Notes under the pieces: generated by a model
Database searches by the model: none
The model's input: only the letters and a program-made list of their open reading frames with translations
Told to the model about the DNA's origin: nothing
Made by a program: the position numbers and the translations under genes
Shown: positions 25,501-28,500 of the stretch, piece by piece
Numbering within the stretch: the stretch's first letter is position 1
Layout of the letters: each line of letters starts with the position of its first letter
Assembly (NCBI RefSeq): GCF_001194135.2
Contig: NC_068984.1
Coordinates: 11,610,884 to 11,674,883, forward strand
Origin: Octopus bimaculoides
Lineage: Eukaryota
DNA: 64,000 nt
Reading direction: 5' to 3'

Positions 25501-28500
25501 AGCAAATGTGAGAGGATGCTAAAAGAGAGAACAACTGGGAGAACCAGAGTGGTAGGAGGGAGAGAGAGAGAGAGAGAGAGGGAGAGAGATGAAGAGAGTG
25601 TGCGATAGTCAGCTGGACGATCTCTCTCTCTCTCTCATACATATATTTATAAATTTTGACACACATGAAAGTATCTTACTTTTGTTTATTTTTAGAAATG
25701 TACTTTCCTTTTCACATTTTACTAAAATCATATTAATGTGGTATACCAGTTTTCTTTGCTTGGAACTGTATTACATTTTCCAACAAGCAGCTTCGTCTAC
25801 TGTTTGGCTTTATGCAGATTGTTTCCCCTACATTCAGGGGAAAACGAGCCATTCTCTCGTTAACACTAAATAGAATCGATTATCAGTACTGAGGTGAAGT
25901 GGGTAGCAACTCAGTACTTGATTTTATCATCTTCGAAGGGATGAAATGCGAAGTCTACCTCGACAAGATTCGAACTCAAAAAAGTCAAAGACAGTGACAA
26001 AATATCATTTTATCCGCCGCTCTGCCGACTTTGCCAACCCACGAATCCTTAAAATGACATAATGCCAGTAATCTTGAGGGGGAGGGGGACAGTCGATTAA
26101 ATCGATCTCACTACTTCACTGGTACTTTATTTTATCGAGGCCGAAGGGACAAAAGGCAAAGTTGACCTGCACGGGATTTGAACTCAGTACGTAAAGAACG
26201 GGGAAAAAAATTGCAGTAAGATATTTATATTTTTCTGACGCAGGAGCGATTCAGCCAGCTCGCAGCCTCCACGAATTTTTTTTATAAAAAGCAATAATAA
26301 ACAAATAAACAGTATTCAACTAAACCATCTCAAAGAGAGAATTATATATATATATATATATATATATNNNNNNNNNNNNNNNNNNNNNNNNNNNNNNNNN
26401 NNNNNNNNNNNNNNNNNNNNNNNNNNNNNNNNNNNNNNNNNNNNNNNNNNNNNNNNNNNNNNNNNNNNNNNNNNNNNNNNNNNNNNNNNNNNNNNNNNNN
26501 NNNNNNNNNNNNNNNNNNNNNNNNNNNNNNNNNNNNNNNNNNNNNNNNNNNNNNNNNNNNNNNNNNNNNNNNNNNNNNNNNNNNNNNNNNNNNNNNNNNN
26601 NNNNNNNNNNNNNNNNNNNNNNNNNNNNNNNNNNNNNNNNNNNNNNNNNNNNNNNNNNNNNNNNNNNNNNNNNNNNNNNNNNNNNNNNNNNNNNNNNNNN
26701 NNNNNNNNNNNNNNNNNNNNNNNNNNNNNNNNNNNNNNNNNNNNNNNNNNNNNNNNNNNNNNNNNNNNNNNNNNNNNNNNNNNNNNNNNNNNNNNNNNNN
26801 NNNNNNNNNNNNNNNNNNNNNNNNNNNNNNNNNNNNNNNNNNNNNNNNNNNNNNNNNNNNNNNNNNNNNNNNNNNNNNNNNNNNNNNNNNNNNNTGCAAC
26901 GAAAATTTTAGAAAAATATAAAAAAGAAATAAGTGGAAATTTTACCGGTGAGTGTGTTAAAAAAGAATGACTCTCCCCAGACACAACAGAATATGCTTCA
27001 ACACACGAAATCACATAAAGAATCTAGCAAACCGAATCCAAAAACCAAATATATATATATATATATATATATATATATATGTTAAGTTTATTCACTAATA
27101 AAATCATTAGAATGTTGTTTTTTAGAAAAATAAAAACAGTAAATTTATATAAATATCTTGATTTCTAGCTTTTCTATGGGAAAATGTCTTTTTTTCAAAT
27201 CTTTTCTATTGAGAATTATTTTCATAACCTCTAGCTTGTTTACAAGGAGTGTCAACGAAGAGCTAACAAGTTCAAGGACACAACAACAATGGGAAGGACT
27301 GTTTTGTTAACTCACGGCGAAGCAGAAAACAAAAACTAACACGTGTTTAGGACATCAAAGGAAGGATGTATTACAGAGTGTTTTCCAGTGGTTGGATTTA
27401 ACGTCATGTAAATGATGAATTATGATTTATCTTTGAAGAAAAAAGTTGATAAAAAATAAAACGTAGAAAATTTGCGCTTTTTCCACTTATAAAATATATA
27501 ATTGGCTTATATTTCTTACAATTAAAATTAAATTAAAACCGTCTATATATTCGTTAACCTCTTCGACAGAGCTCCCCTACAGGCGTAAGCTCTCTCACCA
27601 CAAGGTAGTCCCGCGGTCCATCCTGCACATCACTAATTAGACGACGAGGCATTTGGCTACCTTAAGGGAGAGATGACGAGGCATTTGGCTGCCATATTTA
27701 CGTTTATGTATTCGTTTTGTAAGATTCTTGATGTGAAATTGCGTGTTGAAACAGATATTGTTTTACTTCGGGATTGTCATATTTTGCCAATTAAACACAT
27801 GCACTGTTTGGTCTTCACTTCAGCTTTATTATGTTAGTTTCTTTGTCGATCTTCTTTCGTCACACATCCTGTGACCTGTTCAACAACTCTACCCTACGTG
27901 TCTCCTCTAGTTCTGCAGAACAAGAGGTGACACGTGGCATAAAAAGTCGTTGAAAAGGTCACAGTATGTGTAACGAAAGAGCAAAATACGACCATCCCCA
28001 AGTATAACAATAAGTCTATAATTAATCTAGTTGCAAGGAGAGGAGGAAAACTGATTCCACTCTATACATCCCGAAGGAGGTAGTGTCATCTAGAAGAACC
28101 ACTCGAAATATTTGAGCAATTATTTTGTAGGATTGGAAAACATTGAACTTGTTGCAGATAAGCGCGCGCGCACACACAATTGTGTTGCTCAGCATTTTAT
28201 TTGTGGAAGGATTTCTTACACTTGGCATTAGCACACAATAACAAATTTGGAAACCGAATGATATATTTTTATTCACTGACCCCAGAGGGATGAGAAGCAA
28301 AGATGAAATCGGCAAGAATTGAACGCTTGAGAGAAGACCGGCATTAAACTATTTCGAGTGTTTCTCTATCTCATCTGCCATGTCATATTTATAGAGAAAC
28401 TTGAACTCAGAACAACACTATTTATGCCTTCTCGACGTACTAGAAATAGCAGCCTAATCGCCTTTGAACCAAACTCCTATCTCTAAAAAAAGATACACAC

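Follow-up and report, generated by a model that had tools for sequence, protein, structure and literature searches.

The window analysed in this study, a stretch of 64,000 nucleotides of Octopus bimaculoides (contig NC_068984.1), carries within intron 1 of a glycogen phosphorylase gene a 145-bp insert containing two overlapping pieces of 28S ribosomal RNA (rRNA) sequence. We consider it probable, if only modestly so, that this insert is a dead, old chimeric retrocopy formed in a single event, in which an enzyme of the long interspersed nuclear element (LINE) type switched template onto 28S rRNA twice. In its general appearance the insert looks like an ordinary old retrocopy without function. 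Both 28S pieces span the sequence of the R2 retrotransposon target site, and a first-pass annotation of this DNA had proposed a footprint of R2-type enzyme activity; a specific link between the insert and R2 is not supported.

Anatomy of the insert

On the minus strand, from 27716 to 27540, the locus reads in five blocks AACGAATACATAAACG, TAAA TATGGCAGCCAAATGCCTCGTCATCT, CTCCCTTAAGGTAGCCAAATGCCTCGTCGTCTAATTAGTGATGTGCAGGATGGA, CCGCGGGACTACCTTGTGGTGAGAGAGCTTACGCCTGTAGGGGAGCTCTGTCGAAGAGGTT and AACGAATATATAGACG. The features are given below in this order, with 28S positions counted from the R2 nick.

27701-27716, no strand: right copy of the target-site duplication, CGTTTATGTATTCGTT (repeat search, 14/16 match, shuffles)
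27697-27700, minus strand: TAAA, 5′ end of the insert, untemplated bases or flank (sequence reading)
27671-27696, minus strand: short 28S copy, TAtGGcAGCCAAATGCCTCGTCATCT, from −5 (certain from −2) to +21 (24/26 bases)
27617-27670, minus strand: long 28S copy, CTCcCTTAAGG/TAGCC...GTGAtGtGCAgGA(-)TGGA, from −11 to about +44; R2 site 27660/27659 uninterrupted (45/50 bases over 27670-27621; Rfam LSU 2279-2310)
27556-27616, minus strand: GC-rich 3′ part of 61 nt (no 28S, Rfam or window match; two small hairpins)
27540-27555, no strand: left copy of the target-site duplication, CGTCTATATATTCGTT, adjoining the 3′ end of the insert (repeat search, shuffles)

The two 28S pieces have the same sense, overlap by 26 nt and meet at a blunt junction, +21/−11. 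They differ from each other at 3 of the 26 shared positions, each change being private to one copy. Because there are no shared derived changes, the 28S duplication dates from the insertion event or from its source and not from later slippage. The first-pass annotation had let the duplicated copy begin exactly at the GG preceding the nick. Such a start is possible; it is not demonstrable, because the short copy can be aligned from TAtGG (27696), three bases further upstream. Of these three bases (27694-27696, TAT against TAA in 28S), two agree with 28S; their origin is as ambiguous as that of the adjacent TAAA. The stretch 27694-27700 also shows weak AT-rich homology to the paralogous arm of a local inverted repeat described below.

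Identity of the 28S rRNA pieces

As judged by alignment, the two pieces are derived from 28S rRNA. An 84-nt 28S target oligonucleotide taken from a structural study of R2 (bioRxiv 10.1101/2024.11.11.623112) served as reference; identity to it is 45/50 bases for the long copy (27670-27621, minus strand) and 24/26 for the short one (27696-27671, minus strand). The 21-mer TAGCCAAATGCCTCGTCATCT was found twice with one mismatch per copy (27659-27639 and 27691-27671), while 0.00 occurrences are expected from shuffles, and the repeat search reported the 28S pair as 26 nt long, 88% identical and separated by 32 nt. Also, the Rfam model LSU_rRNA_eukarya (large subunit, LSU) matched 27660-27629 on the minus strand at model positions 2279-2310 of 3401, with 20.6 bits and E = 0.011 in a 701-nt search. 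Re-reading of the sequence confirmed the minus-strand reading of the first-pass annotation, and the 28S-derived stretch outside ribosomal DNA (rDNA) that it had reported is real and forms a discrete insertion.

The long copy carries five substitutions, two of them CpG-to-TpG changes (GACGCGCA to GATGTGCA). The match of this copy probably extends to 27617 (28S +44), with GGATGGA standing against GAATGGA and one deletion; the 28S continuation used for this comparison was taken in part from a small-RNA sequence. Taken over both pieces, the divergence from the universal 28S sequence is ~8/81, about 10%. The bottom-strand nick of R2, GGCTA/CCTTAAG, i.e. TTAAGG/TAGCC, is fixed by the cleaved oligonucleotides GACGAGGCATTTGGCTA and CCTTAAGAGAG… of an R2 kinetics paper (PMC13000458); by these oligonucleotides it maps to 27660/27659, exactly where it had been annotated. 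The locus does not belong to an rDNA unit, since only ~80 nt of 28S are present and the site is an intron of the glycogen phosphorylase gene. A search of the whole window against Rfam at a permissive threshold revealed no further rRNA-like fragments.

Target-site duplication and borders

A 16-bp direct repeat (27540-27555 and 27701-27716, 14/16 identical) abuts the GC-rich island on both sides. The GC content is 0.45-0.65 inside the island and 0.05-0.35 outside, and it is the sole GC-rich island of this stretch. Matches of 14/16 were obtained in 4 of 1000 shuffles when zones of 100 nt on each side were allowed, and in 2 of 3000 when the copies were restricted to the island borders. Because the repeat abuts both island edges and is rare in shuffles, 27556-27700 is read as an insertion of 145 bp that is flanked by a target-site duplication of 16 bp. 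The GC-rich segment 27555-27616, suspected in the first-pass annotation to be part of the same insert, is indeed part of it as 27556-27616, the whole of 27556-27700 being bracketed by the repeat.

LINE-mediated retrocopies are flanked by duplications of roughly 7-20 bp, a range that includes the repeat found here. A duplication of 16 bp fits staggered nicks of the LINE type and is longer than those known to be left by DNA (cut-and-paste) transposons and long terminal repeat (LTR) elements. The two copies of the duplication differ at 2 of 16 positions, which together with the 28S divergence of ~8/81 is consistent with one old event.

An assembly chimera or contamination by rDNA reads would have to be considered in a scaffold with N gaps, the nearest of which lies at 26368-26894. 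The insert, however, is located within the gap-free region 26895-31923, has unique AT-rich intron and a copy of the duplication on either side, and includes only ~80 nt of 28S. Because of the 16-bp duplication and the ~10% decay with two CpG-to-TpG changes, we give an artefact of this kind a very low probability.

The same borders bear on a capture at the DNA level, in which rDNA and other DNA would have been used as filler at a repaired break in the intron without reverse transcription. It is known that repaired breaks can contain templated insertions, and a patchwork of short, blunt-joined segments lacking a tail would suit it. The 16-bp flanking duplication, in contrast, would not be expected if a break with blunt ends or short overhangs had been closed by end joining, and the recognisable pieces all have the same orientation and stem from an abundant RNA. 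We therefore consider DNA-level capture decidedly unlikely.

Proposed origin by template switching

For the favoured retrocopy, the following course of events is proposed. A LINE-type (non-LTR) endonuclease would have nicked the AT-rich intron with a stagger of 16 bp, and the plus-strand 3′ OH at 27555 (…ATTCGTT) would have primed reverse transcription of an RNA ending in the present 27556-27616. The enzyme may then have changed over to 28S rRNA at about +44 and synthesised cDNA as far as −11, followed by a second jump to 28S rRNA at +21 and copying to about −2/−5. Joining of the cDNA to the upstream end and gap repair would have duplicated the 16 bp. Thereby, a 145-bp insert between AACGAATAyATArACG copies (minus strand) would have been left, which subsequently decayed by ~10%. 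In this sequence of steps an RNA intermediate, the order of the template switches, the use of the 3′ part as first template and the class of the enzyme are all presumed.

Template jumping as such had already been suggested in the first-pass annotation. In general terms this idea stands, as it offers the simplest route to two overlapping, same-sense, blunt-joined 28S pieces; the naming of R2 as the enzyme does not. For human LINE-1, sense-oriented 28S/L1 chimeras of 50-482 nt with a preferred 28S region of 3636-4115 have been described. By the numbering of human 28S, we take this region to include the segment found here. Double template jumps by LINE reverse transcriptases are documented for a fungal LINE (PMC2104539). 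Within the window, retroelements are present in the form of LINE reverse-transcriptase fragments and an abundant short interspersed nuclear element (SINE). The partner enzyme of this resident SINE was probably not responsible for the insert, because the resident SINE ends in (GAT)n.

Several points weigh against a LINE-type retrocopy. The right copy of the duplication is also the first 16 nt of an arm of the local inverted repeat, a slight complication; alignment of the paralogous inverted arm reaches as far as the insertion point, and beyond it only a low-complexity AT-rich match is found. No empty orthologous site was obtained, the contig compared from a relative, L001 (closest protein match), covering only 2.6 kb. 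The nick site TTCGTT/TTGTAA is T/A-rich and not diagnostic. The 3′ end of the insert (…GAAGAGGTT; …GTCGAAGAGGTT) bears no poly(A), A-rich or simple-repeat tail and no recognisable LINE tail, one of which a retrocopy should show. Finally, casting the 61-nt part as a LINE tail is pure inference, because this part matches no LINE or SINE of the window nor anything else searched.

The GC-rich 3′ part

The 61-nt part is a candidate for the first template, be it the 3′ tail of a LINE or SINE or another RNA. On either strand it showed no significant similarity to the 84-nt 28S target (p about 0.25). Its origin as a further piece of that target was rejected: the best alignment, ACCGCGGGACTACCT against ACGGCGGGAGTAACT (12/15), and an inverted match, CTACCTT…GAGAG, were equalled in 486/2000 and 565/2000 shuffles. 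Searches against Rfam at E values up to 10 returned nothing meaningful, 5S, 7SL and small nuclear RNA (snRNA) included, and a tRNA search was likewise negative. In a BLAST search of the neighbourhood against the window, every part of the insert occurred only once, and no similarity was found between the 61-nt part and the 3′ regions of the three LINE fragments or the seven SINE copies of the window. Exact-pattern scans of metagenome contigs gave 0 matches both for the chimera of 28S plus flank and for the flank itself, a canonical 28S 36-mer had 0 matches in viral contigs, and 15-16-mers of the 61-nt part had 0 matches in paper texts.

The part folds into two small hairpins, with z = −1.9 on the minus (28S-sense) strand (6/200 shuffles) and z = −0.26 on the plus strand. 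This predicted difference points, if weakly, to the minus strand as the RNA strand. The sub-hairpins reach z values of about −1.9 to −2.2, which is marginal. The insert as a whole was also considered as a structured RNA or microRNA (miRNA)-like hairpin and rejected, its z of −0.77 being not unusual.

The architecture, in which a head derived from RNA is joined to an unrelated structured 3′ part between the copies of a 16-bp duplication, would also fit one copy of a multi-copy SINE-like retroposon with a 28S-derived 5′ part and the tail of a partner LINE as its 61-nt 3′ part. That 28S-derived SINEs exist is shown by SINE28 (PMC4994717), which shares with the insert a retroposed 28S-derived sequence and a target-site duplication. 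Furthermore, TAGCCAAATGC agrees with the polymerase III A box TRGCNNAGTGG at 9/11 positions and GTCGAA is like part of a B box, although both were judged by eye only. In contrast, the window holds one copy of the insert as compared to seven of the resident SINE, no match to tRNA, 5S, 7SL or snRNA provides a polymerase III head, a terminal repeat is lacking, and neither the metagenome contigs nor the paper texts contained matches. The 28S head is internally duplicated and 5′-truncated, resembling an accident more than a master copy. SINE28 itself originates from the 3′-terminal part of 28S, carries a tail of simple repeats, is multi-copy and is transcribed by polymerase III, whereas the insert stems from an internal stretch of 28S surrounding the R2 site, is tailless and was seen once in the window; with Rfam LSU positions 2279-2310 of 3401 and no tail, it falls outside the definition of SINE28. 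A SINE-like retroposon is therefore an unlikely explanation.

The R2 question

In an R2 scenario, the −11 to +21 (32-nt) tandem duplication would have arisen in an rDNA unit by abortive target-primed reverse transcription by R2: after the nick at GG/TA, 11 nt of 28S would have been copied, the second strand would have been cut ~21 nt downstream, and the variant unit or its transcript would later have been copied into the intron. Alternatively, R2 protein might have acted in trans. The fragment does span the R2 site, and the certain homology of the short copy starts at GG, the position which the first-pass annotation had given for second-strand cleavage in Bombyx. In several arthropods, R2 5′ junctions carry 28S duplications of 21-26 bp (upstream sequence); earwig junctions all have a duplication of 22 bp from downstream of the target (Eickbush et al. 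2013, PMC3774820). The 21 nt of downstream sequence duplicated here may be likened to the latter. The likeness consists in ~21-26 bp of 28S next to the R2 site and, for the earwig, in the same downstream 22 bp being covered. The published duplications, however, belong to rDNA and immediately precede an R2 element, whereas the insert lies outside rDNA, lacks R2 and has its repeats separated by 11 nt of upstream 28S.

The positions of the breakpoints do not support an R2 footprint. The short copy starts somewhere between −5 and −2, and the sole internal breakpoint is +21/−11, which is not the R2 nick; any tandem duplication that spans the site can be rotated so as to suit such a scenario. The long copy runs through the R2 site without interruption. 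R2 elements reside in 28S rDNA at TTAAGG/TAGCC, whereas here the insertion went into an AT-rich intron and is flanked by a duplication of 16 bp, which does not resemble the sequence-specific site of R2. No R2 sequence (reverse transcriptase, 3′ UTR (untranslated region) element or 5′ ribozyme) near the insert was matched in Rfam at E values up to 10, and no R2-like reading frame was seen in the six-frame translation, which was inspected by eye and not by profile search. In addition, a recognition bias must be taken into account, as this stretch of 28S is well known to readers and so highly conserved that it is recognisable even after decay, and the many published junction offsets are open to post hoc matching. 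For these reasons, the R2 footprint put forward in the first-pass annotation could not be upheld, and we regard the R2 scenario as highly improbable. More broadly, it is very unlikely that the −11 to +21 duplication is an R2-type scar made with 28S rRNA as template and later retro-copied, or that the unit founds a 28S-headed SINE family.

Neighbouring repeats

The insert region is bracketed by an inverted repeat of ~150 nt (26900-27052 and 27694-27848), of which the repeat search reported only 46 nt. A third, partial and inverted copy lies at 27938-28017. The repeats in 26900-28017 look like a local cluster of one repeat of the type of miniature inverted-repeat transposable elements (MITEs), the right copy of the target-site duplication being its first 16 nt. 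Within this region, 27756-28012 forms a near-perfect foldback of 257 nt (DNA fold −57.5 kcal/mol, z = −10) with ~65 nt extra in the left arm, which appears MITE-like. A match of the plant MIR2646 model at this foldback was discarded as spurious.

Copies of the resident SINE are found at 4137-4400, 5837-6100, 6902-7200, 8314-8600, ~12231, 40050-40346 and ~52802. The element consists of a core, GGCGTTAGGAAGGGCATCCAGC, preceded by 5′ sub-repeats (…CCAGTGCCACCTGACTGGC…GGTGGCACGTAAAAAGCACC) and followed by a (GAT)n tail. It presumably resembles the abundant SINE of octopus genomes; 16-18-mers of the core gave no match in paper texts. The script used detected no target duplications at these copies, so that they are uninformative on their usual length. 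Three decayed copies of the C-terminal/3′ part of a LINE reverse transcriptase, with the motif …LRWYGHVM…, are located at 10153-9726 (minus strand), 4862-4317 (minus strand) and 46527-46714 (plus strand), and one protein match with 69% identity was obtained for a LINE fragment. The copy at 4862-4317 passes without a break into one of the SINE copies, which points to a 3′ tail common to both or to nesting of the insertions.

Host gene and sequence context

The location in intron 1, as annotated before, is correct. Exon 1 of the glycogen phosphorylase gene lies at ~33809-33561 and exon 2 at ~19339-19238, both on the minus strand; further exons are found on this strand at about 16.6, 16.3, 11.7, 9.2, 7.4 and 6.4 kb. 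The 28S sense of the insert corresponds to the sense orientation of the gene. The closest protein match to exon 1 is 83% identical (P0001, Logan run ERR3431203). Upstream of the start codon, a block of 37 nt (33909-33945) is 92% identical to contig L001 (503-539), but the sequence on either side cannot be aligned; judged by this similarity, the block is a candidate for a conserved 5′ UTR or promoter element.

The window belongs to a gap-containing, microsatellite-rich scaffold with a GC content of ~35%. Runs of N occur at 1895-2135, 7260-7378, 15040-15546, 25146-25259, 26368-26894, 31924-32192, 38178-38350 and 55687-55786. They often adjoin (TA)n or (TC)n microsatellites, and at about 7378 one of them breaks an exon of the glycogen phosphorylase gene. 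At 34207-34352, 34475-34600 and 54738-54890 there are long compound microsatellites of (TC)n, (TGTA)n and similar units. Many matches of miRNA models such as mir-297, mir-466 and mir-3149 at these compound microsatellites were rejected as sub-threshold low-complexity artefacts.

Relation to known rRNA retrocopies and significance

A chimeric 28S retrocopy as proposed here belongs to an already known kind of relic. Like the 28S/L1 chimeras of human LINE-1, the insert has a short sense 28S fragment fused 5′ to other sequence within one duplication-flanked insertion, would involve more than one template jump and, by the numbering of human 28S, uses the same broad part of 28S. Unlike those chimeras, it has neither a recognisable LINE 3′ end nor poly(A), its second jump would have led back onto 28S only 32 nt away and thereby to a local duplication, and its host is an invertebrate-like, AT-rich genome. 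Dispersed LSU fragments are common, with 109 reported in the human genome (Longo et al. 2015, PMC4994717). With these the insert shares its small size, its decay, its lack of function and its position outside rDNA; it differs in being a composite of duplicated 28S and foreign sequence with clear borders.

As it stands, the insert is one more dispersed, decayed rRNA retrocopy in an intron, shows no sign of function and matters little. It has a modest value as a clean example, with base-level borders, of two probable jumps onto 28S made by a reverse transcriptase outside the mammals. By the numbering of human 28S, we take the segment concerned to belong to the part favoured by the human LINE-1 chimeras. 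If rRNA fragments throughout the genome recurrently ended at −2 and +21, this would be evidence for off-target or abortive R2 activity, and such activity, if true, would be relevant to the engineering of R2 for gene insertion.

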